Positions 38,832 to 61,147 of a DNA stretch of 64,000 nt are shown here, piece after piece. The notes beneath the pieces were generated by a model, which saw only the letters and a program-made list of their open reading frames with translations, did no database searches and was not told where the DNA came from. Every line of letters begins with the position of its first letter. Position 1 is the first letter of the stretch. Origin of the DNA: Basidiobolus meristosporus CBS 931.73 (Eukaryota; Fungi; Basidiobolomycota); contig MCFE01000313.1 of assembly GCA_002104905.1 (NCBI GenBank), positions 1-64,000 on the forward strand. The letters run 5' to 3'. The position numbers and the translations under genes are program-made.

Positions 38832-39790
38832 ATGGCTGCTCAAATCTCCAAGAAGAGAAAGGTACTTGTCCATTGATTTTTGTTGGTAGTTCGCGGATAG
38901 GCCGTATGTGGTGTCGTGGATTGGATTGGTTATGTTATCCGAGCGACGGATATGCGATGGATGGGTAGTTGTAGAGAATGGATCGGACGCACGAACCGCG
39001 GTCCGGGATGTGTAGTTAGCGCCCTGAGCCAGAGCAACCATGACTAAATGTCTTTCCCTTTGTGTAGTTCGTCGCCGATGGCGTCTTCTATGCCGAGCTG
39101 AACGAATTCTTCACTCGCGAACTTGCCGAGGAGGGTTACTCCGGTGTTGAGGTGCGTGTCACTCCTGCCCGTACCGAAATCATCATCCGTGCCACTCGCA
39201 CCCAAGACGTTCTTGGTGAGAAGGGTCGCCGTATCCGTGAATTGACTTCCGTCGTCCAGAAGCGTTTCAACTTCCCCGAGAACACCGTTGAGCTCTACGC
39301 CGAGCGTGTTGCCAACCGTGGTCTCTGCGCCGTCGCTCAATGCGAAGCCGTCCGTCACAAGTTGCTCGCTGGACTTGCCGTCCGTCGTGCTGCTCACTCC
39401 GTCCTTCGTTTCGCCATGGAGTCCGGTGCCAAGGGTGCTGAGGTTGTTATCTCCGGTAAGCTCCGTGCTGCTCGTGCCAAGGCCATGAAGTTCGCCGATG
39501 GTTTCATGATCCACTCCGGTCAACCCGTCCGCGATTACATTGATACCGCCGTCCGTCACGTTCTCCTTCGTCAAGGTGTTCTCGGTATCAAGGTCAAGAT
39601 CATGTTGGACTGGGATCCTTCTGGTAAGATCGGTCCTAAGAACCCTCTTCCTGATATGATCACCGTCATGGAGCCCAAGGAGGAAGCCCCTGTCACCGAG
39701 CCCATCTCCGAGGACTTCCAGAAGAAGGTCGAGGCCCCTGTTGAGGCTGAGGCCGCCGAGCAAACCGCTGCTCCTGTTGAAGCTCACTAA
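38832..39790 (+). CDS. RPS3: 40S ribosomal protein S3 (uS3); intron 38862-39067
   Basis: [10 protein letters not shown]|[33 protein letters not shown]...[16 protein letters not shown]...[10 protein letters not shown]; strong codon bias. Confidence 0.98.
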
Positions 39791-40282
39791 TTTTCAGCGA
39801 GTTCTCTAATTTATAATAAACGTTCCATGCTGCTTTCTTGGGGTAGCCGCGAATCTTAAATTCAATCTGGTCTTTTGCTTCTTTGGAACATCCCAGTGTA
39901 CCGGTAAATCCGCTTCCTTGGTGTGGATTCAGAAATAGAAATTTTGCAACTGGGATGCCTTAATGGGGAGCACATGTGGGAAACTGGTGGAGGGATTTGT
40001 TCACAGCCGATTAAAGAATACACGACCCCAGGTGCGGATATGTGTGGATATATTTGTTCATCGACGGCACTAAAGATTTACAATCAGAGGTGTGATAGAT
40101 CTGAGATGGCTAATACATAGTAGATTGCTGAAGTTTATTCTTTCGATTATGTAATACTTCTCACATACTGTGAAAGTGGATTTTCATTTACAAAGGTTGG
40201 ATTAACAATGTTGCTTTTGTTCCTGCTAGTCTTACTGATTGCACTGACAATGTAGGTGTGGTACTACTACCGCTTTGCGAGA

Positions 40283-42560
40283 TTAGTGTTGCTGTTGCTG
40301 CTGCTGATGACGCTGGTGTTCGAGATTGTTGTTGATCCGTCCAGTGCTGAACTCGGGGTTGTACGCCTCTGATCCCCATTCTGGGTTGACTTGTTGTGTT
40401 GGATGAAGCGGGTCCTTGCCAACCAGACCTCCCCCCACATTGGCTTGGCCTTGCTCGCGTTGCGCGTTGGCGAGAATCTGCTCGGTGGCTGCCGCCAGCT
40501 GGTTGTCAATGTTCACCATCAGCTCGGTGAGCTTCTCGGGCACCGCTTGCTCAATGACCTTCTTCACTCGTGAGTTGATGATGGGCGAGAGAATCTTGTA
40601 CACAGTGTCGTGCTTCGAGCCATGGATGCGCAGATTGAGGTCATTGACCCGAGTGTTGCAGTCGATCACCTCGTACACATGTGCCTTGCCGGCAGCCGGG
40701 TTCAGGCCGAGTGTCATGTCCAGCTCAATTCCATCCTCGGGCATGTCAATGTCGATGTACCCAACGTCCGAGACCTTGGGGAACGTCTTCTTCTTGTAGT
40801 AGAAGGCGACGTCCTTGGCCCTGACCTGGACGTGGGTGAACTTGATGAACGCCTTGTTGTGGACATTCTGCTTTGCCTGTGGGTCGGTGTTCACAACGGT
40901 GTCCGTCTTGAGGTGGACAAAGTTGGGTGCAATGTTGCTGCACTCGATCACCACATTGTCCAGAATCATGTCCATCTTCTCGTCCGACTGCTCAATTCGG
41001 GGGAGTGGAAGGTACTCGAGCTTCTGGGCAAGAATAGGGATGAGCTTGGCAAAGTCCTTGACCAGGTCGTACTTCACCGTGGGCTTTCCGCTCTCATCCA
41101 TGAACAGGCTCTGCGTGAGGGACTGGAGGTCGTTGGCGAAGCGCTGGGTGGTGCGGTCCGATTGGATGGCCCGGTTGAACTCGCTCATCTCGTTGCTGAT
41201 CTGCTGGAATTGGCCTCGATACTTCCCTTCGACAATGTTGTGGCCACGCTCGATTCAGCCGGTTCGCATCGTCGGTGTATCCCGGGCGATCGACATACTC
41301 GTACTCGCGGATGGAGTGAAGAATGAACGACTTCCAGTCGTCAAGGTACTGGTTTAGCTCGCGGTCATTGTCCACCTGAGTGGCCAGCTCCCTGAACGAG
41401 TTCAGCAATGGGTCGAGCGACTTGTTTCTGGCAAAGTTCTCCACAAGCTCCTTGGCGTTCGCTTGGGCGACCTCAAGGTCATCAGCTCCGGCCTCCTGCT
41501 TCACATTGGCGGTGTCCTGGAGCTGCTCGGAGGCTCTGATCCCGTGTCTCTTGAGTCGAGAGAGTACGCTCACCAGCTCGTCCACAGCTGACTGGAACTC
41601 TGGGTTTCCTTGGACCTCGCGCAACACCGCCTTCATCCTGTTGATCAGATGGTCCTGTTGTTCAGGGGTGAGGTTGACTTCACTGATCTTCTGTTGAAGT
41701 CCCGCTTGCATGTCCTTTGCAGCCCCGGTGACAGCCTGGGTGGCTGAGATGTTCCCCTGCTCAGCCTGGCGAACGTGGGGTCGGGCAGTCTCCTTGGCTT
41801 GGAAGTAAGCCGGGGCGGCAGCGTCTCTGAGCGTGGACTGAAGTGCGCCCGCTGCCTCTCTCGGCTCCATCTCCTCCCCGAGTCTGTTCGCCTGGCTAGG
41901 GTCATGCTGAGTGTGAGGATAGGTGGAGCGTCCAGTGGCTGGATCGACGGTGCTCTGGTTCTGTTGACCTGGGTGGCCAGGGACGTTGGTCTGCACCATT
42001 TCCTGGAAGATGTTGGTCACATCATTGATCAGTCGGCGGAACTGGGGTGAGGTCACGAGAAGCCAGGCCACTCTCGAGATCTTGTCAGCCCCCTCACCGG
42101 CCAGGCCTTTTGCCTCCTCCGCTTGGCTCGCAAGAGCACTGCGAGTCTGCTCCAGATCATTTCCACCACGCATGGTCTGACCAGCCTGGCCACTGTGGTA
42201 GATGGCGTTCTGTAGCTGGTTGTTGTCATTCTTCTCGGCCAGAAGCACCTTTGTGGAGTCGACCAGACGTTCGGTGTCAGCCATCACCTTCTTGCCAGCG
42301 GGGGACATGTTGCTGGCAGCGTTGTGGAGGACATTATCCTCGGTGATCCTGTTCAAGCCCTGATTGATTTGATTGGTGGTGGGGAGCTTTCCTTCCTGCA
42401 GAGCCTGGCCCATCTGTTGCAGGTGCTCCTTCTTTTGGAGGACCTCCTCTTGCTTTGTCCCGGGTCTTGGAGGCAATGTCTCGCCAGGAACCCCGACCTT
42501 AGTGGATTGATTCACGTTGACCGAATGGTCGTTTTGTTGAGTGTTAGGATTGTTGTTCAT
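40283..42560 (-). CDS. HAM1-like (DUF5923/DUF4449-type) protein, left copy, 1-nt insertion at ~41254
   Basis: Same protein as 43141-45417; CTGAATC versus CTGATC splits it into 488-aa and 301-aa ORFs. Confidence 0.85.
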
Positions 42561-43140
42561 ATTTTAAATTAGCCTACAATGATTCGTACACTTTCGGAGG
42601 TGGGGAGATTTGTATTTATAAGGAAGCATGGATTTACTACTTCATTGCATACCTGAGCCACTGATTTTTCGTTTCATATTATTTTATAACGTCATTCACA
42701 TGTATAGCGACTCTGACAACCAAATAAACTTTAGACTTCATTACATCGACTACATGTTAGCACGGCAGCTCTCTGACGTCAAATTAATCACCATTAATCA
42801 AATCAGCTTTGTACTACCGTACTTCTAGCTGAGTCACGGTGTTCAACTCGAATTGAAGTCTATTCTAGTGCCTTTATCGATATTGTACGCGGTGCGATCG
42901 GCTCTTGAGTGACTTGGCAGGCGCTACTTCTCGCAACTACCGAATTTATTGAACATGATGAAGTACGATTTTGATAACCGACTCTAGCGTTACCTAATTA
43001 GCATCAAATTGTGGATCATTCTTCGTTCATTGATGCGCAACGTCACAGGCTGTCACAACGTCATGCATATTAATATTTCCTGGCGAGTATTTAAGCATAC
43101 GAAAGTGGCTACAACCTGACAAACATACTGTTGCTTAATC
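42561..43140. promoter_or_regulatory. Bidirectional promoter with clustered CRE/ATF and AP-1-like sites
   Basis: TGACGTCA at 42774-42781, ACGTCA at 42689, 43040 and 43058, TGAGTCA at 42830-42836; TATA-like elements near each end. Confidence 0.6.
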
Positions 43141-45417
43141 ATGAATAACAATCCCAACACTCAACAAAACGACCATTCGGTCAACGTGAATCAATCCACT
43201 AAGGTCGGGGTTCCTGGCGAGACATTGCCTCCAAGACCCGGGACAAAGCAAGAGGAGGTCCTCCAAAAGAAGGAGCACCTGCAACAGATGGGCCAGGCTC
43301 TGCAGGAAGGAAAGCTCCCCACCACCAATCAAATCAATCAGGGCTTGAACAGGATCACCGAGGATAATGTCCTCCACAACGCTGCCAGCAACATGTCCCC
43401 CGCTGGCAAGAAGGTGATGGCTGACACCGAACGTCTGGTCGACTCCACAAAGGTGCTTCTGGCCGAGAAGAATGACAACAACCAGCTACAGAACGCCATC
43501 TACCACAGTGGCCAGGCTGGTCAGACCATGCGTGGTGGAAATGATCTGGAGCAGACTCGCAGTGCTCTTGCGAGCCAAGCGGAGGAGGCAAAAGGCCTGG
43601 CCGGTGAGGGGGCTGACAAGATCTCGAGAGTGGCCTGGCTTCTCGTGACCTCACCCCAGTTCCGCCGACTGATCAATGATGTGACCAACATCTTCCAGGA
43701 AATGGTGCAGACCAACGTCCCTGGCCACCCAGGTCAACAGAACCAGAGCACCGTCGATCCAGCCACTGGACGCTCCACCTATCCTCACACTCAGCATGAC
43801 CCTAGCCAGGCGAACAGACTCGGGGAGGAGATGGAGCCGAGAGAGGCAGCGGGCGCACTTCAGTCCACGCTCAGAGACGCTGCCGCCCCGGCTTACTTCC
43901 AAGCCAAGGAGACTGCCCGACCCCACGTTCGCCAGGCTGAGCAGGGGAACATCTCAGCCACCCAGGCTGTCACCGGGGCTGCAAAGGACATGCAAGCGGG
44001 ACTTCAACAGAAGATCAGTGAAGTCAACCTCACCCCTGAACAACAGGACCATCTGATCAACAGGATGAAGGCGGTGTTGCGCGAGGTCCAAGGAAACCCA
44101 GAGTTCCAGTCAGCTGTGGACGAGCTGGTGAGCGTACTCTCTCGACTCAAGAGACACGGGATCAGAGCCTCCGAGCAGCTCCAGGACACCGCCAATGTGA
44201 AGCAGGAGGCCGGAGCTGATGACCTTGAGGTCGCCCAAGCGAACGCCAAGGAGCTTGTGGAGAACTTTGCCAGAAACAAGTCGCTCGACCCATTGCTGAA
44301 CTCGTTCAGGGAGCTGGCCACTCAGGTGGACAATGACAGCGAGCTAAACCAGTACCTTGACGACTGGAAGTCGTTCATTCTTCACTCCATCCGCGAGTAC
44401 GAGTATGTCGATCGCCCGGGATACACCGACGATGCGAACCGGCTGATCGAGCGTGGCCACAACATTGTCGAAGGGAAGTATCGAGGCCAATTCCAGCAGA
44501 TCAGCAACGAGATGAGCGAGTTCAACCGGGCCATCCAATCGGACCGCACCACCCAGCGCTTCGCCAACGACCTCCAGTCCCTCACGCAGAGCCTGTTCAT
44601 GGATGAGAGCGGAAAGCCCACGGTGAAGTACGACCTGGTCAAGGACTTTGCCAAGCTCATCCCTATTCTTGCCCAGAAGCTCGAGTACCTTCCACTCCCC
44701 CGAATTGAGCAGTCGGACGAGAAGATGGACATGATTCTGGACAATGTGGTGATCGAGTGCAGCAACATTGCACCCAACTTTGTCCACCTCAAGACGGACA
44801 CCGTTGTGAACACCGACCCACAGGCGAAGCAGAATGTCCACAACAAGGCGTTCATCAAGTTCACCCACGTCCAGGTCAGGGCCAAGGACGTCGCCTTCTA
44901 CTACAAGAAGAAGACGTTCCCCAAGGTCTCGGACGTTGGGTACATCGATATTGACATGCCCGAGGATGGAATTGAGCTGGACATGACACTCGGCCTGAAC
45001 CCGGCTGCCGGCAAGGCACATGTGTACGAGGTGATCGACTGCAACACTCGGGTCAATGACCTCAATCTGCGCATCCATGGCTCGAAGCACGACACTGTGT
45101 ACAAGATTCTCTCGCCCATCATCAACTCACGGGTGAAGAAGGTCATTGAGCAAGCGGTGCCCGAGAAGCTCACCGAGCTGATGGTGAACATTGACAACCA
45201 GTTGGCGGCAGCCACCGAGCAGATTCTCGCCAACGCGCAACGCGAGCAAGGCCAAGCCAATGTGGGGGGAGGTCTGGTTGGCAAGGACCCACTTCATCCA
45301 ACACAACAAGTCAACCCAGAATGGGGATCAGAGGCGTACAACCCCGAGTTCAGCACTGGACGGATCAACAACAATCTCGAACACCAGCGTCATCAGCAGC
45401 AGCAACAGCAACACTAA
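43141..45417 (+). CDS. HAM1-like (DUF5923/DUF4449-type) protein, intact intronless 758-aa copy
   Basis: GKLPTTNQI, LLVTSPQFRRLINDV, ELVENFARNKSLDPL, LEYLPLPRIEQSDEKMDMILDNVV, VQVRAKDVAFYYKKKTFPKVSDVG, HDTVYKILSP resemble the fungal family containing S. pombe C32A11.02c (recollection, not searched). Confidence 0.8.
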   Translation: MNNNPNTQQNDHSVNVNQSTKVGVPGETLPPRPGTKQEEVLQKKEHLQQMGQALQEGKLPTTNQINQGLNRITEDNVLHNAASNMSPAGKKVMADTERLVDSTKVLLAEKNDNNQLQNAIYHSGQAGQTMRGGNDLEQTRSALASQAEEAKGLAGEGADKISRVAWLLVTSPQFRRLINDVTNIFQEMVQTNVPGHPGQQNQSTVDPATGRSTYPHTQHDPSQANRLGEEMEPREAAGALQSTLRDAAAPAYFQAKETARPHVRQAEQGNISATQAVTGAAKDMQAGLQQKISEVNLTPEQQDHLINRMKAVLREVQGNPEFQSAVDELVSVLSRLKRHGIRASEQLQDTANVKQEAGADDLEVAQANAKELVENFARNKSLDPLLNSFRELATQVDNDSELNQYLDDWKSFILHSIREYEYVDRPGYTDDANRLIERGHNIVEGKYRGQFQQISNEMSEFNRAIQSDRTTQRFANDLQSLTQSLFMDESGKPTVKYDLVKDFAKLIPILAQKLEYLPLPRIEQSDEKMDMILDNVVIECSNIAPNFVHLKTDTVVNTDPQAKQNVHNKAFIKFTHVQVRAKDVAFYYKKKTFPKVSDVGYIDIDMPEDGIELDMTLGLNPAAGKAHVYEVIDCNTRVNDLNLRIHGSKHDTVYKILSPIINSRVKKVIEQAVPEKLTELMVNIDNQLAAATEQILANAQREQGQANVGGGLVGKDPLHPTQQVNPEWGSEAYNPEFSTGRINNNLEHQRHQQQQQQH

Positions 45418-47191
45418 TCTCGCAAAGCGGTAGTAGTACCACACCTACATTGTCAGTGCAATCAGTAAGACTAGCAGAAACAAAAGCAACATTGTTAATC
45501 CAACCTTTGTAAATGCAATCTACCCTTCACAATATGCTAATCAGAGTGTATTACTGTTAAATAAGAATTAAAACAACTTGGCATTTGTCATTTAAATCAT
45601 TGCCACATCTGCACCACCAATTGTTTATTTCATTCTGACTTGGATATATGGTGATCAGGAAATTTGCCAGCCATTCCCAATGGTGAAATCATCCAGTGCT
45701 TTATACAAAGGATGGTCGGGCGACACCTCCACCTTGATACATGTTAAGCCGGTTCATTTTGGCAAATGTTGAAGATCGAAGTTGTTCAGTATGGAAATCT
45801 CCAAGATGGGTATGCCTGTGTCCAGTTGGGAGGTGCCTGAGGACCTGCAACCAAAATTTGATTTGTGCTTTCGCAATGACACACAAGTGACCATAATTGA
45901 CGGCGGACAGAGGATTTCCAGTGGCCAATGGCTGGAGGGGAATTTGACCTGCGCGCCCGGCTAAAAAACGGAACTTCCGTGCCACTTCAAGTAGAATGGC
46001 TGAGCTCTTGAAACGCCAGATCTGGTAATCAGAATTACAACCAGCAGAGCTCATATGAAATGCAGTGGGTAGTGGTAGTCATCAAAGAATTTCCATCCAC
46101 TGTCCTAGTTAAGCAATATGCTATACACTACTCAAATAGAACACATCTCATATTGCTATTTGGAGTTTGGGTACAGGTACAGGTACGGGTGCGGTTGGGA
46201 GTGTGGGGGAGGGTTGGGTCCGTGGTAAGCAAACAATATCTGATGGATGAAACAAGATTATCCATGCGCATGCATCCTGGAGACGGTTACCAGGAATTCC
46301 CAGGCTCGTTGAACAAAGTTGCGTTATCCAGGTCCAGTCATAAATAATATCTTTGTGGACGTCGCCGTTTCAGTGTCAAGTTAATTTTGTATCTGTTGAT
46401 GTCTCAGTGTCAAGTCAACCCCCAAATAGGATAAGGTACGTATGTGTTGGTTTGGCAGAACGCCATTGGCCACCTGCCCACTCACCCGCTCTGCAGGTGA
46501 GGTGCAACCGACCTATATGGGAATTATTCAGGAGTCTGGTGGGAGAATGTATATGACTATATTAATAAAGCATAGAAAAATTAGGGTATAGAGGATGTCC
46601 CACGCCTCTCACTTCATTTAGACATTATTTCAGCCACCAATATCAGAAAGTGTCACAAGAATCTAGCGAAAATCAATTGAGAATACTTGGGGCTGAAGCA
46701 TTCCAATTAATGAGGAATGTCTGGGGACAGGCACTAAATCGCTGTGGGTCATAGTGAGAATTGCGAATGTCAAACCCCACCAGTGCTGGATCTCGTGAGC
46801 ATGACTCATGTTACGCAAAGAATCCGAAAAGAGCTTGGATGTGTCAAAACAGTCATTCCATTTCCTAGGTAGTTTTGGTATGGATTGAGGCAAAGCAAAG
46901 GTTGATACAGTGGTTGATGCAATAATTGAAACTCCCTACTGGTTATGGCCATAATCACGGTTACCATGCTTGGCTGGTGATAGGTTGAAACACTGGTGGC
47001 CAGAAGCCGTGTTTCTTCCAGGAGCCAACTGAGCCATTCCTGAGGATTGACATAGCTTTTTGCACAGGGGTCAAAGGTGCTCCTCACTCTATGCCATGAT
47101 GCCCGATTCCTATAAATTGCGCGCTGACGCTGCCATGTCCAACGAAAAAGGTGAATCTTGTTATTTGCTTTCCTTAAACGTAACTCGTAAA

Positions 47192-48888
47192 ATGGCTCAA
47201 CTTGCTACATTCAAGATCCCCGAAATTAACAATGAGCCTATGAAAAACTACGCTCCTGGCTCCGAAGAGCGCACCAAGTTGCAAGCTGCTCTTAAGGAAA
47301 TGAGAGAGCAGGCTCCTTTTGAAGTCCCTTGCTTCGTCAATGGAGAGGAAATTAAGACCCAATCCATTGAACAGCAAGCCATCTCCTGTGACCACAAGAA
47401 GACTTTGTGCACCTACCACAACGCCGACTCCGTCACTGTCGCCAAGGTTTGTCATGATTTCTTTAACTGTTTAATACGGCTTTCAGTTTCTCACACTCTT
47501 TTCAGGCTATCGATGGTGCTCTGGCAGTCAAGGAGACTTGGGAAGCTTATCCCTTCAACGACAGAATTGCCATCTTCTTGAAGGCTGCCGACTTGGTCGC
47601 AACCAAGTACAGATACAAGATCAACGCCGCCACCATGTTGGGTCAAGGAAAGAACGCCTGGCAAGCTGAGATTGACTCTGCCTGCGAGTTGGCCGATTTC
47701 TTGAGATTCAACTGCCAGTACGCAGAGGAGCTCTATGCCCAACAACCCCCCAAGAACGCCACCGGTATCTGGAATCGTTCCGAATACCGTGCTTTGGAAG
47801 GTTTCGTCTTCGCCGTTTCTCCTTTCAACTTCACTGCCATCGGAGGAAACTTGGTGTGTGCCCCTGCCTTGATGGGCAATGTAGTTGTTTGGAAGCCAGC
47901 TCCCGCTGCTGTTTATTCCAACTATCTCATCTTCGAGATTCTCCGTGAGGCGGGTCTCCCTGATGGTGTCATCCAGTTCATTCCTGGCCCTGCTCCCGAA
48001 GTCGTTGCTCAAGTCTTGAAGCATCCCGAATTCGCCAGCTTACACTTCACTGGTTCCACCCATGTGTTCAAGCAATTGTGGAAGCAAATCGGTAACAACA
48101 TTGACATCTACAAGTCCTACCCCCGTATCGTCGGTGAGACCGGTGGCAAGAACTTCCACATTCTCCACAAGTCTGCCGAGGTCAAGACCACCGTATGCCA
48201 ATCCATCCGTGCTGCCTTCGAATACCAAGGCCAAAAGTGTTCCGCCTTGTCCCGCCTCTATGTCCCTGACAACCTCTGGCCCGAATTCAAGAAGACCTTG
48301 ATTGAGGAACATGCCAAGATCACTGTTGGCCCTGTTGACGAGTTCTCCAACTTCATGACTTCCGTCATCAACCAAGCCGCATTTGACAAGATCAAGTCCT
48401 TCATCGATTGGGCCAAGACCTCCGATGTTACCGAGACCATTGCTGGTGGTACCTACGATGACTCTGAGGGTTACTTCATCCAACCCACTATTTTGGTCAC
48501 CAAGGATCCCAAGTCCAAGACCATGGTTGAGGAAATCTTCGGTCCTGTCTTGACCATCTACGTCTATCCTGCTGATGAATACGAGCAAACCTTGGAGCTC
48601 ATCAACACCACCAACTCTTACGGTTTGACCGGTGCCGTGTTTGCCCGTGATCGTCAAGCTGTCATCACTGCTACTCGCATCCTCCGCAACGCCGCCGGTA
48701 ACTTCTACATCAACGACAAATGTACTGGTGCTGTTGTTGGACAGCAACCATTCGGTGGTTCCAGAGCTTCCGGTACCAATGATAAGGCCGGTTCCATCAA
48801 CCTCTTGTACCGCTTTGTCTCATCCCGCTCCATCAAGGAGAACTTCATCCCTATCGAAGACTGGGCCTATCCTTCCAACCAAAAATAA
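47192..48888 (+). CDS. PUT2: Delta-1-pyrroline-5-carboxylate dehydrogenase (ALDH4); intron 47447-47505
   Basis: NEPMKNYAPGS, GQGKNAWQAEIDS, SPFNFTAIGGNL, GETGGKNFH, AFEYQGQKCSA, EEIFGPV, QQPFGGSRASGTNDKAGS; TATAAA at ~47111. Confidence 0.96.
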
Positions 48889-50150
48889 GTCCACATTAGA
48901 ACATCGTGTGGAAGGGCTCAGGAGCCACGGTCAGGTTGAAAGGGTTGTATCATAAACATCCATTCTCTCTTCATTCACATTCATTAAGCAAACAGAACTA
49001 TGTTCCCTCCTTTCCCCTTAACGTGTCTTTCCGCCCTTCTAAACCACACCCATCAAAAGCCGCTAATTCGTTTATTAAAGAATCCTGAGAAAACCATGTT
49101 ACGCATGAACCGATGTGATTGGACGATGGTGGGCATGGGTGGAAAAATTGATACAACCACACTTAATCCAATATTCACCAACTTTGGTAGAGGCTTCGTG
49201 TAACCAAGGCCCGGATTGGATGGTAGAGTCTCATATTGTCGCTGCATACCTGCTTCAACCAACCTGGGCTAGTCGATGGACGTTTGAAGCAGGATTTGGG
49301 ACACACAGCTGTGACAGTAGCAAGGTGACCAGATCATCGATATCCCAGCGGACGAGGTTGGGAGCCGTGTTATGTCCCAGCAGCTCTCGAGAACTCATCG
49401 AAATTTCCGGCGCCCTCTGAACGCCCACAATATCGGGTACGGAGGTAAGGAAAAACCCCTGTGCTGGATGACAAGGCATACCAGGTGTGGGGTAACGAAT
49501 GGGTGGCTGACAGGTTCCACGGGTGTGGGGTGCGATTGGGTGGTTGAAAATCTCCCCTACCCACGAGCTACATCCCATACATGTCTTGCCTCAAGGCCCA
49601 GGAACCATTTCTCCAGGTCCGGAATGGCCCAGGAGCACCACAATTCGATTGGCCCTCCGCCGAATATGGATCGTATCATCTGTACCTTGTGTAAAGGTTG
49701 GCTGCAGGCACCATCCTCCATATCGTGGTGAATCGAGCCGCTCAGCAATACAAATGATTGCTCATCTCCACTGGGCGTTCGTGAATACCAATCGCCCCGA
49801 TCCTGCCGAATGGGGTGGCGCACGATACCACGCTCGCCGAAAAGCCTGGCCAGTCACCGGTTGCGATGGATGAATTTGGCACCTGGCGGTTGGAAAGTTG
49901 TGAGTCATAGGCTAGGGGATTGCGTTGGAAAATCCGGCATCGACCTGGAACTCTGCTTGGGTGGGAGCCTGATTATTGCTCAGCACAGCTGGAGTGCCCA
50001 ACATGATGGGAGGTTTCAAACTTGCTTCTATATAAAACTGGAATTCCTCAATCATTGCAAATCACTGATATGCTGTCTGAGGGCCGTTTAGTGCCTCTTA
50101 TACTGTTTGGAGCTCACGAACATGGTCAGCATTAGTCTAGGCTAAGTTTG

Positions 50151-50646
50151 TGTTGGAAGAGTTTAGAAGATATCGGAAGTGATTGGTAGAACAAGTAGAT
50201 TATGTGGTTTTCACCAAATGATTTATTGAGTGTAAAAGTGGTATTTATACTTTTACATGGTGTTGGCAAAACTAGCACATGGAGTATGTCTAGGAAGGAC
50301 CCAAGAGCATGCATGTGCAAAGGTTGGGGTGGTTTGGACAACTTTGACAAACTTTATGTTCTGGGTATCTGATATTTTGGTGAAAAATACATCAAGTAGG
50401 TCCCATCAAGAGATCTGGTCAGAATTCTGTAAGATTTGTAGTTAACAATCCAAGTGACTGGGTTAGGAGAGTATTTAGGTGTAATTACACAATCCACAAC
50501 ACTCCCACTCAACTAAATATTTGTATTAACTAGTGCTAGTTGTGAACTAAGATATTCAAGTTTGTCTTTGGCTAATGGTTTGGTCAATATGTCCAAAATC
50601 ATTTCATCTGATGCAGAGTAGACTAGCTTAACTGAGTTACTCTCTA
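50151..50646 (-). mobile_element. Copia fragment A: 3' LTR (50151-50501), polypurine tract and RNase H end
   Basis: LTR homologous to the family; CTCCCACTCA at 50502 (PPT TGAGTGGGAG on minus); upstream minus strand reads ...DILTKPLAKDK. Confidence 0.8.
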
Positions 50647-53600
50647 TGTTGTAAATCCTGTAATCACACATAAATACTCTCCTAACCCAGTCACTTGGAT
50701 TGTTGCCTACAAATCTTACAGAAGTCTGACCAAACTCCTTCCCAGCATTTACCTAAAATATTTCAACAAAATATCAGGGACTCATAACATGAAGTTTCTC
50801 AAAGTAGTCAAAATAACCTCAAACTTTGGTCACATGCTCTTGGGACATTGCTAAGTATTCTACATGTTTGTTTTGCCAAGACCAGACAAAAGTACAAGTA
50901 CTATTTTATCATTCAAGAAGTTGCTAATGTTGTAAGAGTCTTGGAGATATTGGAAGTGATTGGGAGAACAAGTAGATTATGTGGTTTTCACCAAATGATT
51001 TATTGAATGTAAAAGTAGTATTTATACTTTTACATAGTCTTGGCACTAAAAACACGTAGAATAGATTGAGAAAGATTACAAGAACATGTGTGCAAAGTTT
51101 GAGGCTGTTTGGACAACTTTGAGAATTTTCATTTTCTAGATACCTGGTATTTTGGTGAAAATATTCTAAGTAAATCCCAACATGGAATTTGGTCAGTATT
51201 CTCTAGGATTTGAAGGTAATGATCTAAGTGACTAAGTTAGGTGAATATTTAGGTGGAAATACAAGTTTTTACAACATTTCCACTCAGCTAAATGCTCATA
51301 CTGACTAGTCCTAATTTTGACCTAAGATATTCAAACTTGTCTCTAGCTAATGGTTTGGTAAATATGTCTGCAATCATTTCATCTGTAGGACAGTCAACTA
51401 GGCCAACTAAGTTATTCTCTTTAGCTTCACAAATGAAATGATGTCTAATATCTATGTGCTTGGTTCTAGCATGAAAAGTTGAATTTCTACCTAATTATAT
51501 ACATCCTTGATTATCTTGAAATAAAGTAATAGGCGTTTTTTGACATAGGCCTAAATCTGTAAAAAGCTTTCTTAACCACATTGCTTCTTTTTTAGCTTCA
51601 CAGGCTGCCATATACTCTGCCTCTGTGGTAGAAAGAGCTACTGTTGGTTGCTTTCTTGAATTCCATGAAATTGCTCCTTGACAGTAAAGTAAGGTGTATC
51701 CTGTGGTGGATCTTCTGTCTTCTAAATTTTGTCCCCAATCAGCATCAGAGTATCCCACAAGATCCTGTTACAATTCCTTATAAGTGTATCTTAAGCAGAT
51801 ATCAGCAGTTCCTTTTAGGTATCTAAAATCTGCTTAACTGCTGCAATATGATCAGATCCATAGTACTGATTATGTAGGCTGACAACTCCCACTGAATACA
51901 AGATATCTGGACGTATTCCAAGCATAATATACATCAGACTGGCAATCACAGATTGCTAAGGAAAGTCAGGGCTTTCAGATGGCACCAAGCTCTCTTGATT
52001 TGCTTTGGTATTGAAGAGTCTGTATGCCTTACTCTCATTGCAGTAGCCCAAAGATATGCATTTTACACTTTTTGGCTCTAATTTTGACTGATTTCCAGGC
52101 AGTTACTTGGCATATGCTGTACACCCAAATATTCTTAGATGTTCTGCACCTGGCCTGGATTCATACCATGCTTCAAATGGAGTGGAATCACAAAGTATTC
52201 TGTTATAACTCCTATTTTTAAGGTTTACAGCTGTATCAACTGATTCCACTCAAAAATCATTGGATATTTTTGATCATGGAGCATAGATCTTGCCATATCA
52301 TTTATTGATCTGTTAGCACGTTCAGCTACTCCATTTTGCTGTGGGGAGTATGGTACAGTAGTCTCTTGCTTTATTGCATGAATTTTGCAGAAGTGGATGA
52401 AGAGTTTTGAGGTATATTCTCCACCATTGTTAGAGCATATTTTCTTGATTTTTTCACCACTTTCTCTTTCCACCATGGCTTTAGACTCCCTGAACTTAGG
52501 CAGAGCTTCTTCCTTTCTCTCCATGAGGTAGACCCATGTGTATCTTGTATGATCATCAATAAAAGTGATTAAATACTTCATCCCACCTAAGGATAAATTT
52601 TGCATAGGTCCACACAGATCCAAGTGAATTAGATCTAATATTTTCTTAGTTTTGATCAACCCAGAGCTCTTGAACAGTTGTCTGGCTTGTTTCCCATATA
52701 TGCAGGCTTCACAGTGCTCCAATTTAGCTGGGGGATCAATTCTTACTCCAGAAATTAGCTGATCTTTGATCATTTTGTGCAAATATTAAAAATTGACGTG
52801 CCCAAATCTCCTGTCCCAAAGCATTGGTATTTCTTCATTTAAGTTACTTATATTGGCTTCCAAATATGATGGAATATAATTCAACTCATATAGATTCTGA
52901 TCTCTGATACCCAAAGCAATATAGGCACCATTTTGATAAGTGATCTTGCATCCAGAATTGTCAAAGCTGTAACAGAGTCCTTCCGCTGTGGCCTTGCTTA
53001 CAGATAGTAGGTTCTTGGCTATTTCTGGTACATAGAGCACTTCTTTAAAGGTCAGTGTATGGCTTCCTTCATTGCTTCTTAGGTTTACTTGGATAGTTCC
53101 TTGTCCCACTGCATCAAGTGTTCTATCATCACCCATGAAAGCCTTCTTAATTGGAATTTCTTGATATTGGGTTAAAAGTTCTTTTTGGTGTGTAAAGTGT
53201 TGAGATGCTCCAGAGTCAATATGCCAGGTCTGAGAATCCTTGTTTATGGTCATATATAGTGCAGGTATGAATAGTCTATCTTCAGTTGTTGCAGCATTTC
53301 TGTATTCAAACTTTTTCTGCTGACTATCTTTCTTTTTGAAGCACCAGTCAGATGTGTGTCCTTTCTTTTGCAGTAGCCACAGAACAGGTTGCTGTTGCCT
53401 TTGTAGGATCTTGGGCACCTCCTTTGTTGGTTATCATTGCTTATTAAAGCATTTTCTTCTTCCTTATTGGCACTTGATTTTCTTAATTCTTCATCTAGGA
53501 GCCTTCCATATTTGTAACTTAAGGTCAAATCTTCAGTTCTGGACTCTAGGGCTGATACAAGGCCCTGAAACTTGTCTTTCAGGCTATTCAGGATGGTAAC

Positions 53601-55050
53601 TATCATGTCCTCATCAGTAGTTGGTGCACCCACAGATTCCATTTCATCTACCTGCAGGGTGATTCTGTTAATTAGATTTTCATTTCTTCTCCTGGCAGCA
53701 TCTTTGTAGTAAGGAATTTTTGTCTCAGATGCATTTTCTTAGCAGCTGAACATGACTGGTAGGTGTCTTCTAATGCCTTCCAGGCATTCTTTGCTGTTTT
53801 GCTCTTGAGCATTGAATTAGCAATTTGTCCTTAACATTAAGGCAAATGCAGTTAAAGGCAGTTTGTTCTTTCTTCTGGTACTTTAAGGCTTCCTCTCCCA
53901 CATTTTTAGGAGGGCACTCTTCTCCCATGACAATATCCCAAAGGCCTTTTTCTTATGGCAGCATCTTCATCATCCAATTCCACACTTGGCAGTTAGATCC
54001 ATCCAACTTTTCAGCAGAAGGAAAAATTCCAGTAATAGCAGTTGTAGACATTGCAGAGAGTGACAGCTTGGTGCTCATAACCTGTTGTAAGAGTCTTGAA
54101 GATATTGGAAGCTATTGAGAGAACAAGCAGATTATGTGGCTTTCACTTGATGATTTACTGAAAGTAAAAGTAGTGATTATACTTTTGCATGAGCTTGGCA
54201 TTACAGACATGCAGAATAGGCTACAAAAGGTCCCAAGAACATGTGTGCAAAGTTTGGGGCTGTTTGGAAAACTTTGAGAATTTTCATTTTCTGGGTACCT
54301 GGTATTTTGGTGAAAATATTCCAAGTAAATCCTGACATGAAATTTGGTCAGTATTCTCTAGGATTTGAAGGTAATGATATAAGTGACTAAGCTAGGTGAA
54401 TATTTAGGTGGAATTATGAATTTTTACAACAGTTAAGTGCAGACCACAAATATACTTGTTCTCCCAATCACTTCCAGTATCTCCAAAACTCATTCTTCAG
54501 GCTATGGGCCTCAGGTAGTCACTTTCTGGAGTACTTTCCACTGCTACTACTGGAAATTTTCTTTGTAGTGAAAAGTTAGATGCATCAAACTACTCAGTCT
54601 GCAAGGCAAAGATAAAAATACTGCTACAGGAAAGAGGCCTTTGATATATTATCATGGGAGAAGAGCTTCCTCCTAAAGGAGTAGGAGAGGGGACCCTAAG
54701 GTACAAGAAGCTATACAGAAGTGCTGTTCACTGAATCTGCCTTAAAGCTCAAGACAAATTGCTAATTCAATTCTCAAGAGCAAAAACAGCAATGAATGCC
54801 TGGAGGTCATTAGAAGACAGCTACCAGTTATGTTGAGCTGCTAGGAAAATGTATCTTAGCAGAATATTCCTTACTACAAGGATGGCTCAGGATAAGAAAT
54901 GAAAAATTTAATCAACAGAATTACCCTGCTGGTTTATGGGATGGGATATTTGGGTGTATAAACTACTGATGGAGATGTGATGGTAACCCTCCTGAATAGC
55001 CTGACAGGAAAGATTTAGGGCCTAGTATCAGCCTCAGAGTCCAAAGCTTA
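50647..55050 (+). mobile_element. Copia fragment B: 5' LTR split by element C (50647-50927 and ~54437-54499), PBS and decayed gag
   Basis: LTR sequence resumes after 54436; GGCTATGGGCCTCAG PBS-like at 54500; degenerate gag SEKLDASNY...KILLQERGL follows. Confidence 0.8.
50928..54431 (-). mobile_element. Copia element C, 3.5 kb, two LTRs, RT largely deleted, inactivated
   Basis: LTRs 50928-51276 and 54083-54431; PBS (GGTTATGAGCACC on minus) at 54070-54082; TSD GCTAA/GTTAA; gag, CCHC knuckle, protease WHIDSGASQH, integrase DLCGPM...PQQNGVAER, RNase H YSDADWG; integrase joins the RT C-terminus near 52000. Confidence 0.92.
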
Positions 55051-55299
55051 AGACATGACTTTAGAGTAGGTGTTGTATCCAAGAGATAAGTGTAATAAAG
55101 CTCTTGAAGAATTCAATTGAACCAAAGGGATAATTAAGTGCAGAATCTCAGAATGTGGCAAAATATCAGCACAAATATTCTGGTTGAATGCTGGTTGTGG
55201 ATGTAGCTGGGCTTATCATCAGAGTGATATTTAAGTGACTCTTGATTGGTTGCCTGACAATTTACTCACCTTCCAATCCCAGACACACTATCACCTCCT

Positions 55300-58200
55300 A
55301 TGTTTGTGTGCATTGATTGGCTATTGCCTCTTTATCACACTCCCTACTTCTTGACTCAACCATTTCTCTTACTTCTCATGCGTACAATTGATTTATTGCT
55401 GTTGACACTTCAGTTGTACCTCAATAGCCAATTGTATTGTCCTATAAATCCCTATACCCTACACTAACATTAAGCCCAACCCCACACTCAACAAGTAACT
55501 CCATTAATATCCACCACTCAATAAGTATTTCTGCTTTAACACTCTGGTTCCATAACTTTAGCAGGAACCCAATGGCTTTATGCCACTGTTCATTCACTGG
55601 TTCCCACACATCCTGGTCTTCATCCAGCACTGCAAGGTCTAGCACCTCATCTGCCAGTCTATGCAATAAATCTTTGCAATATTCAAGTGTGTTTTCTTGA
55701 GCACTGCTCTTGAAGAAGTGTTGCAACCTCTTGGTGTGCCTATTAATGTTCAAAAACTCCACTGAAGGCATTCTGATAGACTTTTGAGTTCTTGACATTG
55801 TAGCCTTGTCTGTCAGTGGGATCTTCACTCTGTCAACAATGCAAGGTGTGGAGGCTGTGGTTGACAAATTGCCTTTTTCTGCAAACTCATCTACCTTGCT
55901 GGAGTGTAGCTCAACTGGCTGTGCTTCCAACTCTTCTAAAAACAGCTGTTTCTTGTTGGTAATTCTTCTTGACTATGATAGGATTCAGTCTGTTCCTGGC
56001 TTGTAGCCTTAATTGGCAAGAACTGCAGTTTTTTTGCATGCCTCCCTGTCTCAGGCTTGGGTTGACATTTTTCTCTAAATCTTTTCCTTTATCACTGCCA
56101 GGTCTTTCACCACTACTTTGTCCAAGTGCTTCTTGTAATGAACTATGTTTTCTCCGTGATATATTCTGCTCAGATACAACTGTTTTAGCCTGCCTGTTCC
56201 TTGCTGGTACTCTCCTGGCAACCTGGTGTTTCTTTTCTGCTTGTTTGAAGCTCTCATCTGTAGTTTTGACAGGCTGTTGTAAAAGCTGCCAGTTTTTATC
56301 ACTGCCAGGTCCTTCACTGCTACTTTGACTGAGAGCTTCTTGAGTGGTACTATGCTTTTTCCTTGATAAATGTTGTTCTGATGCATCAATGTCTGCCTGC
56401 TTGTCCCTAATTGGCACTCTTCAAGCTACCTAACATCTCTTTAATGCTTGTCAGGAGCTTCTGGCCCTGCCTGTTACAGGCTCTTGAGGAGGCCACTAGT
56501 ATTTAGCCATGGTGCCCTTGTGCTTCTGCCTTTGATAGTTTCTGCTATTCTTAAGATACTTTCTTAGCATACCAATGCTGGCCTAAAATCTGTTTACTTG
56601 TTTGAATCCAGGATAACACTCATGGAACAAGTCAAGTGTATACTGCTTGGCCTTGAGTTCCTGATGGTCCCATGGTATACTGGCCTTAAGATGATGGTGT
56701 GCTAGACTTCTGACAGCCTCTTGAATATTAGCCCACTCTTCACTATTACACTCAATGGCTTCACAGATCTTCAATGTCTTTTGATTTTTTGACTTTAGAA
56801 TAAACACCACATTGTCTCCTGCCCACAATGTAATAGGTTCTTTTATGGGCTTTATCTTTTGACACTGTTGTTGTGCTTCAAAGACTGTACAGTGTTTCTC
56901 TACTGTTATATTAGGAAATGGCTCAATTCTTGGCTGTGACATTGAGCAGCTTGAGTTTCTTTATTGCAGCAAAGATACTGCTTTCTCTACCTGGGATATT
57001 GATTGCTCTACATGTATTATCTGCTTATCCTGTTTCTGGACTATTTCCAGATTTCTCTGGGCTATTGCATCTATCCTATCTGCCACTCCACCTATTTGCT
57101 TCATTGATGCTTTGGTATGAGCTGACAACATAATTGCTAATATGGGTGGTGGTGATGTTATGATGTCTACTTGCTGATCTTTGACTGAGGGTACTGCATT
57201 TGCTACATTCTCATCTGCCTGAGCACAATGGTCAGCTTGTGGCTCCGCCAAGGTTCTCAATTGCCTACTTGACCAAGAGCCTGAGGGGTCCGCATTATTA
57301 CCTTCAGTGGGCACTATGTTAATATGGCCTTATTTAGATGTAGCCCTGCTTGTTGCACTGAATGTCAAAGCAAGCTGTAGTCCAACCTTTCTTCTGCTGC
57401 CATCAATGGTGGGGTTTAGTTGGGGACCAGATGACTTTGTTTTATTTTTTGGCAGTATATACATGAAACTGAGACAAACCAAAGGGGAAATAGTGTTACA
57501 TACACATGTATATGTGGTGCCATAACTTTATTATAATGCTTACTATGATGGGTCATAACTAAATCTTATATTCATGTAGGTACAATGTCTCAAATACAAG
57601 ACTGTCTTAAGTTCACATGAGTGTTGACCAAAAAGTGGTATAATAGCATTACATTATTGAAGGTCAAGCTGTTTGCCCCATGGACAAGACTACTTTGACT
57701 CAATACCATAAGAGAAGAGAATAAAAACCATGTGGCTATTGTTTCAAGCCTCTCAGCCATGAAGCACACAGACAGCATAGGAAGTGTTACAAGGATCACA
57801 GCCAGTGTTTTGCCACCCAAGTCATATTTAACCATTCATTAATCACTACTGTACCAACATTATCTTGCTGGCCAGTTGATGCTTCTATATTGGCACCTGG
57901 CTGTCTTTGTCACATTGTGCAAACTCAGTCAGGTGAGTTTGTGATGCCTTTAGGCACACCTCAGCCTTCTGAATATGGCATACAGAGTGATTGCTCTGAC
58001 AAGAAGGTTCACTGATGGATTGTGAGTCTATCTCCCCTAACAACAGTACCATGTATGAGCCTGGTCAAATCCCAATATGCAATGAGACAACACCTGTTGT
58101 AACAAATGCCAAGGATACTTTATGGAGCCAAGTGAGCCCAGTAATCCATCTACTGGTGAATGATGTAATGCTGTGGCTAGAGAAGTGGTGCATTTCCACT

Positions 58201-58940
58201 AATATCAGTAATGCAGGCTTTGAGGATTTATTACTAGTTCTTGCCAAAATCATTCCAGGATGTAACTTACCATGTACATGGCACAAGTGGACAACCATCA
58301 TTTGGCTGGCAACATATGATCTAGAGACTGTCCTGATTCAAGCATGTGCTAACAGTTGCATGACATTTACATCCAAAAATGCACAATTGCAACAAGTCCA
58401 AAATGTCAGGAATCCACCACCATTGAGGGAAAACATTGTTCACACTTGGGATATATTCTGGTAATACCCCATCGGAGGAAGCTAATTCAGTGCAACAACT
58501 ATTGCAAAGCTATACAGTACTGCACTCAATATCAATCAAGCGCAAGCATATCCAATATATTTGATGGCAAACATTACAAACAGCTAAGAAGCAAGGGCTA
58601 CCATGAAGGTATGCAAGACCATGCCTTTGCCTTAGAACTTGATAGATTCCCATTAAAGAAGTACTTTACAAGTAAATCTTGCTCCCCACTGCTTCTCATC
58701 AATCAGAATCTGCTGCCCATCTTATAGTTTCAGAGCAATAATCTGATGGTAGTCTCACTGGTATCTAGGCCTAAGTCACTGTCCAACCTTGATAGCTATC
58801 TGTATACATTGCTGGATGAATTTTGTATACTTTCCAGCAGGATAACAGTAAATGACTGTCATGTAAAAGCTCATGTCATTATCTGCATTGGAGATACCCC
58901 AGCCAACAGCAAGATAGCTAGCCTTTCTGGGTTTGTGTGA
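55300..58940. mobile_element. Decayed CACTA/EnSpm-like DNA transposon: Tnp2-type transposase remnant (+, ~58015-58940) and divergent second ORF remnant (-, ~55400-57314)
   Basis: Plus-strand fragments IQACANSCM, NIFDGKHYK, LLLINQNLLP...NLMVVSLVSRPK...LDSYLYTLLDE, AHVIICIGDTPANSK follow the Transposase_21 motif order; many stops; termini not found. Confidence 0.6.
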
Positions 58941-59192
58941 ATTGATTGGCTATTGCCTCTTTTTCACACTCCTTACTTCTGGACTCAGCCATATCTGTTA
59001 CTTTTCATGTCTATGAATTGATTTATTTCCATTGAAGCTTCAGTTGTACATCAATTGCCATTTGTATTGACCTATACAAGTCCCTATACCCTACATTGAC
59101 AATAAGCCCAACTCCACACTTAACAAGTACCTCCATCAAAATCCACCACTCAATAGTATTTCTGCTGTAATGCTTGGGTTCTATGACTTTGG
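58934..59192 (+). repeat. ~260-bp diverged direct repeat of 55301-55562
   Basis: TGTG...ATTGATTGGCTATTGCCTCTTT...CCCTATACCCTACA...ATCCACCACTCAATA shared between the two sites. Confidence 0.85.
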
Positions 59193-59199
59193 AGGGAAC

Positions 59200-60571
59200 C
59201 CACCCTATGAAAATAATTTGGTCCTGCAGGTGGTTCCAATCTGGATCAGCCATCAAGATCCCATTTAGAGGCCATCATAATAACAGCAGCTTGGAATTAG
59301 TGACTCACCTAACAATCTTACGATGGGATCATGTTGGTGTATTGCTAATTTTACAGCCAAATAGAGGGATCAAACTTGACAATATTTTATTGGTGCTGTG
59401 ACAATATTTGATGGTATTGTTGTGGTCTTTCAGCACTCTATAACTATTTTAAGTGGATCCAGTTGGCCAGGACATTCAATTTGCTTATATGGCAAGCAAT
59501 GTGATAATATTTCAATGGCCTCACAGCAAGACTCTGATGGCATTATAGCAGCAGTATGATGGCCTACTGCTGGTTCTGTATAATGCTACCCTACAAATTT
59601 ACCAAATGGTATTTCCTTTTTCTACCTCTCCTTGTGCAATTCATACATTCCACTGCAGAATTGCCCCTCTTTATTTGCTTACCCACTACTACCTTGGGTA
59701 TTCCACATTTGTATTGAATCATAAAAAACTATTGCCTCCTGATTACCAACCTCTACAAATGTGCACACCTGCCGCAATTGGCATACTTCTATCACCTCAA
59801 CTTAAAGCTTTTAGTGTGATACTTGCAAAGTTGCCATATACCTTGTACTGCTGGCAACATATGTGGGTTATTACTGACTGTACTTGGTGAGTGGGAGAGC
59901 TTGTTGGTCAAGTCAGTACCACTTGGTTCAGAGTAGCTTCCAATAGAAGGTAGCAAGGTAATAAAGACTTGTGTTTATTTTGTCCAAATCCTCCTCTTGC
60001 TTGGTTCAATTGGGTAGATATATATATATCACTTGGGGGCTTAGTGTTATGAATAGACACAAGGCAGGAGAGTAGGGCTAGGCAAGGCAGGACCAGGAAA
60101 GGACTTAGGTGTGGATCAACAAGGCAAGGCGGATTTCCAAGGCAAGGCTGTTTATTCAAGACCTGTGTTTATCGGACTGAGGAATACTTAAGGGGGGATA
60201 GGACAATATATACTTTTTGGTTATACTGATGCCAAGAGATATTGGCTAATACTAATGGGGTTGTGAGGTGAGGCACAGCAATGTGCTGGGGATAATAATA
60301 TAGAAGGCAAGGCACTGAGACAGGATGGAGAAATGGATTGGGTAACCTGATCATGTGACTAAGTCATATGACCTGGTTTTTCCATATATGGTACTGGACT
60401 ATGAAAAATATGATGGGAAGCTTCCATGGAATGTTCCATTGTGTAACAATGGTTTGGAATGGTCAGGAACTTTCTGGAAGGTGGTAGAAGGTTCCAGAAG
60501 GAATCTCTTAGAAATTGAGCTTGGAAGCTGAAACTTGGCATGGGTGTTCATGGTTGTCATATGATCATGAC
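59200..60571 (-). mobile_element. Probable highly decayed Ty3/Gypsy LTR plus gag/protease remnants
   Basis: Minus strand starts TGTCATGATC at 60571, has TTCCAGAA/TTCTGGAA motifs, TATATA run and AATAAA; downstream stop-ridden coding-like sequence. Boundaries uncertain. Confidence 0.35.
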
Positions 60572-61147
60572 ACTTAGATAATAGACAATGTGTTATAAAA
60601 TAGGGGTGTGAACACCTTCCTGTTATGGTAAGTGTTCTAGCTAGATGAGGGCAGGGATAGGGGGGAGGGCGCGTGGGGGAATCATAGGGAGGATACTGGT
60701 GGACTTTGGGTAGGACTCTGGAGAGAACTCTTGGGCAAAGAGTGGGTACTGCATTTAGTACTTACATATCCTGGGGGTTAAGAGGGAGCTTTGTCCTTGA
60801 AGTTCTTTTGACTAACTTGCTTCTCCAGGGTCAATTTTGTTCACGGAGCATGGGGAGTCACCATAGTACCATTGCTGGTTGTCACTTGCAAGGGGGTTGC
60901 AGGCAATTACCTGGTACCATTCAGCGGCAGAGTGGGGTGTGGCTTTTGTTGCTTGAGGGATGTTTTCCACAGAGCCCAAATAGTTGGCAAACTATAGGGT
61001 TCTGTGTAAGTTCCTTGGGAGGGTTGGAGAACAAGAAAAGGTGCAATAGCGCGATAAAGTCTTGCTTCTTTATCTTGCAAACATTGTTGGGGCTTGTCCT
61101 TTTAGTGTTCAATATGATGGCTGGGGACCTTTTGAAGAGGGTGTACA

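Follow-up and report, generated by a model that had tools for sequence, protein, structure and literature searches.

The occurrence, in a fungal genome, of two nearly identical genes lying head-to-head in the arms of an inverted repeat raises the question of what keeps them alike. The copies could resemble one another because they arose recently, because one arm repeatedly corrects the other, because a double dose of their product is selected, or because a single gene was assembled twice. In the window analysed here, which is the whole stretch of 64,000 nucleotides from the start of contig MCFE01000313.1 of Basidiobolus meristosporus CBS 931.73, we argue that the head-to-head pair is probably an old inverted duplication of a HAM1-like gene, homogenised by arm-to-arm gene conversion.

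A repeat search and a global alignment confirm the inverted repeat, with its left arm at 40164-42560 on the reverse strand and its right arm at 43141-45536 on the forward strand. The inner block (41255-42560 and 43141-44446; 1306 nt) is 100% identical between the arms, the outer block (40164-41254 and 44446-45536; 1091 nt) is 99% identical, and overall identity is 99.6%. Within the core (40185-42560 versus 43141-45515) global alignment finds 9 substitutions and one 1-nt indel, figures which, together with a unique spacer of 580 bp, reproduce those of the original prediction; beyond the core the homology of the arms fades over ~21 further bases. The left arm contains one HAM1-like copy with ~120 nt of 3' flank (GenBank K493DRAFT_409229), whose ATG lies at 42560 and whose counterpart of the stop codon falls at ~40283-40285. 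The right copy (43141-45417) is an intact single-exon open reading frame of 758 amino acids, followed inside the repeat by its 3' flank (45418-45536), of which the final 21 nt (45516-45536) are ~20-25% diverged and contain 2 indels, the homology stopping there. The assignment to the HAM1-like family is based on matches to HAM1_N (PF19343; 331 bits) and HAM1_C (PF14613; 28 bits), both above the Pfam gathering cut-off of 27 bits, the latter marginally so, and the reading frame aligns colinearly with HAM1-like proteins annotated in B. ranarum and B. meristosporus.

The spacer between the two arms (42561-43140) holds the 5' flanks of both genes, such that less than 1 kb separates the two starts; it is unique within the window and has a GC content of 39% and a CpG observed/expected ratio of 1.26. 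A search of the spacer for internal symmetry or self-complementarity yielded nothing above chance, as did a search for homology between the outer flanks past the arms, and the flanking genes differ, with RPS3 on the left (39152-39790) and an aldehyde dehydrogenase gene on the right (47578-48888). The structure is accordingly a palindrome in which inverted arms enclose a unique, non-repeated spacer and are themselves bordered by unique sequence. No Rfam match to a non-coding RNA was found across 38-48 kb, in or near the spacer, and a metagenome scan for relatives found none.

The expectation that both arms would carry a gene of 758 amino acids holds for the right arm; in the left arm the frame is broken at codon 436 by an extra A at ~41254 on the reverse strand, where GAATC replaces the GATC of the right arm. 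This frameshift splits the left copy into open reading frames of 488 amino acids (41094-42560) and 301 amino acids (40283-41188). The GenBank model of K493DRAFT_409229 bypasses it by means of a 52-nt GT..AG intron at 41196-41247 on the same strand, and splicing out this segment reproduces the GenBank protein of the left copy. That the intron is genuine is unlikely, since it would delete 17 conserved residues, including N441, I442, K446, Y447, R448 and F451, which are invariant in our comparison of homologs; it is probably an annotation patch hiding the frameshift. Two practical corrections follow for the public annotation, namely that the left model appears to conceal a frameshift in a false intron and that the right model is shortened, ending early at residue 679. 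The inserted nucleotide itself either arose very recently as an inactivating mutation or is an error in the assembly consensus; if real, it could still be erased through conversion from the intact right arm.

Seven of the eight coding differences are synonymous and one is non-synonymous (omega 0.04, P=1.7e-4), and because of this imbalance we conclude that both copies were under purifying selection until very recently, which supports the earlier assertion that the pair is maintained. These differences are distributed unevenly; besides the indel, the sites that distinguish the two copies are at gene positions 6, 15, 1198, 1686, 1809, 1992, 2062 and 2151. The first 15 nt of the coding sequence contain ~2 synonymous sites, both of which differ (P=1.2e-3); none of the ~270 synonymous sites at gene positions 16-1197 does so; at positions 1684-2154 the count is 5 of ~107 (pS 0.047), dS in the 3' third of the gene being ~0.05; and the last 21 nt of homology contain 4 substitutions and 2 indels (P=1e-6 at the interior rate). 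The divergence of the arms is, in other words, heterogeneous, saturated at both edges and absent from 1.18 kb of the interior. The difference-free stretch of 1182 nt (41364-42545 on the reverse strand; partner 43156-44337) gives p=0.02 in a max-gap test, a weak result in that such tests of conversion tracts here compare two sequences only.

Saturated edges around an unchanged interior favour an old, converted duplication over a recent one. On the reading we prefer, the inverted duplication would be old, and the coding regions together with ~100 nt of 3' flank would have been repeatedly homogenised by intrachromosomal conversion, divergence having made the outer flanks, and the 5' flanks within the spacer, unrecognisable. 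Conversion tracts would seldom reach the ends of the homologous block, and hence the first 15 nt of the coding sequence and the last ~21 nt of 3' homology would retain the old, saturated divergence; the interior would be a mosaic of younger tracts, with the stretch free of differences presumably the most recently converted. Both the mechanism and the age of the duplication we infer from this pattern, as we do the extension of the original duplication beyond the coding sequence. The flanks themselves appear to preserve no residual similarity, the local alignment scores between the two 5' flanks being no higher than shuffle means. An 8-mer, CGAAAGTG, which both flanks contain at comparable distances from the ATGs, was considered as a remnant of promoter homology and dropped, since the alignment is no better than shuffles.

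The competing explanation that best survives is a single recent inverted duplication (dS ~0.014), in which a segment from the ATG to ~120 nt past the stop was reinserted in inverted orientation 580 bp upstream without later conversion. The near-identity of the arms overall, the lack of homology outside them and the clustering of paralogs by species in the tree of HAM1-like proteins are all consistent with such an event, and mutagenic repair synthesis at the duplication junctions could mimic the edge effect. Nevertheless we regard it as rather unlikely, as the divergence is far from even at the two edges and over the 1.18 kb without differences, a breakpoint falling precisely on the start codon would have to be put down to chance, and a copy lacking its promoter would be unlikely to give an omega of 0.04. 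Concerning a retrocopy, there are no introns in the gene whose loss could reveal one, and no poly(A) tract is seen at the 3' edge.

The tree, a quick IQ-TREE result, groups within-species pairs in three Basidiobolus subclades, and B. ranarum likewise carries two co-orthologous proteins, K7432_012574 and K7432_017343. Further HAM1-like pairs of B. meristosporus are K493DRAFT_299405/299406 and 132170/246805. Such pairing is the pattern that concerted evolution would give, and independent duplications would fit these sequences equally well. We tentatively raise a broader possibility, doubtful as it is at present, that the pair exemplifies a genome-wide habit of B. meristosporus in which the arms of many head-to-head gene palindromes correct one another by conversion. 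In the HAM1-like family, where all three subclades contain a within-species pair, an ancestral palindrome may have been propagated as a unit. If this were so, the fungus would rank alongside the Y chromosome, Adineta vaga and Folsomia candida as a system in which palindrome-based gene maintenance can be studied, and the frameshifted left arm would be a substrate caught before its repair, or its spread, by conversion.

That duplicated genes evolve in concert, the coding region setting the bounds of conversion, is a general phenomenon, and the pair described here is a further, ordinary example of it in an inverted arrangement; taken alone, it matters little beyond being a clean case. Near-identity extends from the start codon to just past the stop, divergence is higher at the edges than inside, and nearly every difference is synonymous, so that in principle nothing distinguishes this pair from other instances. 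For the palindromes of the human and ape Y chromosomes arm-to-arm gene conversion was reportedly described by Rozen et al. in 2003. The same process in gene palindromes has been discussed for A. vaga and F. candida (PMC5490193). With all of these the Basidiobolus pair shares inverted arms, a unique spacer and an arm identity exceeding the underlying age, which here is an inferred one; likewise, genes in such arms evolve in concert, and a new mutation, such as the frameshift of the left copy, can be either erased or spread by conversion. It differs from the Y palindromes in scale, their arms measuring from 9 kb to 1.45 Mb as against single-gene arms of 2.4 kb, and in setting, which is a genic region of autosomal type in a zygomycete fungus.

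A long duplication might also be expected to attract repeat-directed mutation or methylation. The contrast in CpG content noted earlier is recovered, with an observed/expected ratio of 0.71-0.72 in the arms as against 0.07 in the block at 50001-64000, which contains copia-type gag/integrase remains and starts ~4.5 kb from the right arm. The depletion in the transposon is specific to CpG, the corresponding ratio for GpC being 1.09. The differences between the arms include 8 transitions, 3 at CpA and 2 at CpG, of which the 6 in the coding sequence are all synonymous. RIP is not known to occur outside Dikarya. The RIP/MIP systems of Ascomycota would resemble the present case in that they would act on a duplicated segment of more than ~1 kb, but the arms show no excess of C-to-T change at CpA, and the depletion of the neighbouring transposon is CpG-specific. 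That the arms have been a target of RIP or MIP is rejected on the grounds that there is no CpA-to-TpA bias, that their TpA/ApT ratio is 0.33 and that CpG is retained. To judge from these base compositions, the depletion would be a transposon-directed footprint and not one of homology-sensing, the arms presumably retaining CpG since its loss here marks transposons and not genes in two copies. Likewise, in other early-diverging fungi 5mC is reported to be nearly confined to repeat-rich regions or transposons and not to mark duplicated genes (PMC11258239). The contrast between genes at 0.7-0.8 and copia remains at 0.07, with GpC normal, may be read as the trace left in the sequence by CpG methylation confined to transposons, here in a fungus of the Zoopagomycota.

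These values bear directly on the interpretation first proposed for the locus, that of a selected dosage-doubling cassette driven by one bidirectional promoter and specifically shielded from repeat-directed DNA methylation. The head-to-head arrangement with 580 bp between the ATGs, the purifying selection on both copies, and the retention of CpG in the arms and the spacer so near to transposons that have lost it would all suit such a cassette. However, the left copy is frameshifted in the assembly, and no exemption is needed, because arm CpG matches that of the ordinary neighbouring genes (0.77); furthermore, the footprint concerns CpG alone and goes with transposons, in keeping with the repeat-bound 5mC of early-diverging fungi elsewhere (PMC11258239). 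The spacer, moreover, is asymmetric, its two halves sharing no significant similarity, and a separate TATA-like element is found ~50 nt before each ATG. These candidate core promoter elements, identified by eye, are TATAAATA at 42613-42620 on the reverse strand, 53-60 nt upstream of the left ATG, and TATTTAAG at 43088-43095 on the forward strand, 46-53 nt upstream of the right ATG. Taken together, these observations make the cassette improbable, and transcription of each copy presumably proceeds outward from promoter-proximal sequence of its own within the spacer. Finally, that the palindrome was made from one real gene copy by fold-back or chimeric long reads is most improbable, for although it is known from one public assembly, on a 97-kb contig, it lies internal to both the window and that contig and possesses a unique spacer, distinct flanking genes, 9 substitutions and diverged edges, whereas fold-back artefacts yield identical arms without a spacer that run into the contig end.

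As to the product of the two genes, the C-terminal half appears to carry a BPI/TULIP-like, putatively lipid-binding domain. A structure model of residues 405-700, of moderate confidence (pLDDT 70.5), returned 20 Foldseek matches in the PDB at E<=1e-3, the best at 4.7e-7, with target-normalised TM scores of ~0.5. The matches listed belong almost exclusively to TULIP proteins, including Der f 7/Der p 7, an insect beta-carotene-binding protein, LBP, BPI, CETP, Takeout and JHBP, and a profile search gave a weak sequence match to BPI (E 0.008). The likeness to TULIP/BPI-like domains (BPI, LBP, CETP, Takeout/JHBP, Der p 7, SMP) concerns the predicted fold, sequence identity to the Basidiobolus domain being 10-18% and lipid binding a prediction. 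The same Pfam families, HAM1_N and HAM1_C, characterise two proteins of other fungi. HAM1 of Cryptococcus neoformans (CNAG_02129) is palmitoylated and regulates mating negatively (PMC11218459), whereas in Neurospora crassa germlings need HAM-13 (NCU06265) in order to communicate and fuse normally, and full phosphorylation of MAK-2 depends on it (PMC6455062). A TULIP-like domain would provide a testable hypothesis for the role of HAM1/HAM-13 in cell fusion and mating signalling. In Basidiobolus the family has expanded, B. meristosporus having at least 7 such genes, and among the matches listed the homologs of Bacidia gigantensis (Dikarya) and Absidia repens (Mucoromycota) are only 26% and 27% identical, respectively. 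Within the family, K493DRAFT_299405 and K493DRAFT_299406 are adjacent paralogs.

A repeat search of the window returned two inverted-repeat pairs, one of 1306 nt at 100% identity (41255-42560 with 43141-44446) and the other of 1091 nt at 99% (40164-41254 with 44446-45536), which abut to form a single palindrome whose arms, each about 2.4 kb long, are separated by 580 nt. Global alignment of the left arm with the reverse complement of the right exactly reproduced the 9 substitutions and one single-base indel counted in the original prediction for the core (40185-42560 and 43141-45515), beyond which arm similarity fades over about 21 bases and then ceases. In BLAST with short words the outer flanks shared no similarity, the spacer lacked self-complementarity, and no third copy turned up in the 64-kb window. 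RPS3 (39152-39790) lies to the left of the palindrome and aldehyde dehydrogenase (47578-48888) to the right, and no known RNA families were found in 38-48 kb of the window. The palindrome structure is real.

The two arms had been described as carrying near-identical 758-aa genes. Such a reading frame, which requires no intron and matches the Pfam domains HAM1_N (331 bits) and HAM1_C (28 bits, cut-off 27), is intact in the right arm only (43141-45417, +). In the left arm one additional A near 41254 (GAATC, where the right has GATC) shifts the frame at codon 436 and splits the copy into ORFs of 488 aa (41094-42560) and 301 aa (40283-41188), both on the minus strand. Seven of the eight substitutions in the coding sequence are synonymous (P 1.7e-4 for at least seven under neutrality; omega 0.04 over 503 synonymous and 1771 non-synonymous sites), which argues that both copies have been constrained essentially throughout since they were last identical. 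The sole non-synonymous difference is S400 in the right copy and R400 in the left, R being found in both B. ranarum proteins. The frameshift in the left copy is of very recent date or else a consensus error.

Both public models of these genes look wrong. P0001, the model of the right copy (100% match), falls in the same 90% cluster as ORX91653.1, the product of K493DRAFT_409229 in B. meristosporus CBS 931.73, and both are encoded on one 97,383-bp contig. K493DRAFT_409229 is the left-copy model (P0022; 741 aa, R400), which skips the frameshift by a 52-nt GT..AG intron (41247-41196, -). This intron deletes 17 residues, including N441, I442, K446, Y447, R448 and F451, invariant in seven Basidiobolus homologs, and we take it to be a gene-caller's patch. 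P0001 has 679 aa and ends at E679, although the colinear stretch shared by the ORF and its homologs goes on for 79 more residues and reaches a conserved WGSxAY motif (45178-45417, +). P0022 was reproduced by script, the extra base being set aside only in scripts, for this reproduction and for the codon-by-codon comparison, and the sequences themselves were left unaltered.

The divergence of the arms is strikingly uneven along their length. Both of the approximately two synonymous sites in the first 15 nt of the coding sequence differ (P=1.2e-3 for at least two of the eight differences falling there), followed by none of about 270 at gene positions 16-1197 (max-gap test, p=0.02) and five of about 107 at positions 1684-2154, while the last 21 nt of 3' homology contain four substitutions and two indels (P=1e-6 if the interior rate applied there). 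We consider it probable that this is an old inverted pair homogenised by gene conversion. The interior would have been overwritten repeatedly by conversion tracts that seldom extended to the ends of the homologous block, leaving saturated edges and a mosaic interior; the start of arm identity exactly at the ATG could then be explained because only selectively constrained sequence remained alike enough for continued recombination. A plain recent inverted duplication is unlikely, since a single such event predicts even divergence up to a sharp junction, and not the edges and mosaic observed. A quick IQ-TREE run resolved three Basidiobolus HAM1-like subclades, in each of which the genes of B. meristosporus pair with one another, B. 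ranarum likewise having a pair in that of the palindrome gene; such pairing would fit concerted evolution or repeated duplication alike. The pairs of the other two subclades (proteins P0005/P0010 and P0007/P0009) lie on other contigs of the same genome; 132170 and 246805 are near-identical, and 299405 and 299406 are adjacent locus tags on one contig. We put neither conversion nor recent duplication more firmly because no residual homology is demonstrable between the two 5' flanks and a metagenome scan found no relatives.

Gene conversion would make the closest parallels the arm-to-arm conversion of Y-chromosome palindromes, gene palindromes known from Adineta vaga and Folsomia candida (discussed in PMC5490193) and, more generally, concerted evolution bounded by the coding region. 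The HAM1-like palindrome is an ordinary further case of a known type; that Basidiobolus maintains genes by palindromes genome-wide, with the HAM1-like family descended from an ancestral palindrome, is a rather doubtful extension.

The mechanism of the original prediction, dosage doubling from a single bidirectional promoter with exemption from repeat-directed methylation, is largely unsupported. The spacer (42561-43140) is asymmetric with unrelated halves, and a separate candidate TATA-like element, chosen by eye and not evidence of function, lies about -50 of each ATG (TATAAATA, 42613-42620, -, left; TATTTAAG, 43088-43095, +, right). Dosage doubling is also awkward beside a frameshifted left copy. 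By the standard of yeast inverted-repeat studies, cruciform- or hairpin-driven instability is a far smaller issue with a spacer as long as 580 bp than in a perfect palindrome.

The contrast between arms that keep CpG (o/e 0.71-0.72) and transposons that lost it (0.07 in the 50-64 kb block) is real, but the arms resemble every other gene in the window (genic 1-40 kb, 0.77), and neither CpG values nor arm differences give any sign of a system that senses homology and from which a gene in two copies would need to escape. RIP-like mutation of the arms was rejected, there being no bias among their differences (of eight transitions, three at CpA and two at CpG; TpA/ApT 0.33). The spacer, at 39% GC, has the maximum CpG o/e measured in the window (1.26; 1-kb bins at most 1.01), as would be expected of an unmethylated promoter region. 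The 50-64 kb block (GpC o/e 1.09, TG/CA 1.34) holds copia-type gag, Pol beta-barrel (Pol_BBD) and integrase remains, in copies 91-93% mutually identical. These LTR retrotransposon remains are nested or inverted across 50000-64000 and 1-1000 (for example, 52266-53369 against 62215-63318, 93%), 664-963 belonging to the same family with the same CpG depletion. Their footprint is one of CpG-specific deamination, expected if 5mC targets transposons, and implies that the transposons of this Zoopagomycota fungus have long been CpG-methylated; in other early-diverging fungi 5mC is reported nearly only from regions rich in repeats (PMC11258239).

Mis-assembly is a highly improbable source of the palindrome, because it sits in the contig interior with a unique spacer, a different gene on each side and non-identical arms.

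A word-based protein search matched the ORF to B. ranarum proteins (81% and 79% identity) and to several paralogs within B. meristosporus (47-58%). To our knowledge, function in the HAM1-like family is known from two genes only, Cryptococcus HAM1 and Neurospora HAM-13. The former is palmitoylated and a negative regulator of mating (PMC11218459); without the latter, germlings do not communicate and fuse normally and MAK-2 is not fully phosphorylated (PMC6455062). In an AlphaFold model built from a 20-sequence alignment (pLDDT 70.5), residues 405-700 (44353-45240, +) form a long curved sheet with helices packed on it, and Foldseek returned 20 PDB matches at E<=1e-3 (best 4.7e-7). All of the matches listed are TULIP/BPI-type lipid binders (Der f 7, Der p 7, insect beta-carotene-binding protein, LBP, BPI, CETP, Takeout and JHBP), and the family sequence profile matches BPI weakly (E 0.008). 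The C-terminal half is thus predicted to form a TULIP/BPI-like lipid-binding domain, which points to lipid binding as a possible role of the HAM1/HAM-13 family.

Elsewhere in the window, two long ORFs of 502 and 1192 aa (3640-8783, +), lacking a Pfam match, appear to encode a large repeat protein with no family assigned; a unit of about 336 nt (112 aa) recurs in them in tandem at least 10 times, the copies being 60-97% identical and the GC skew strongly negative.
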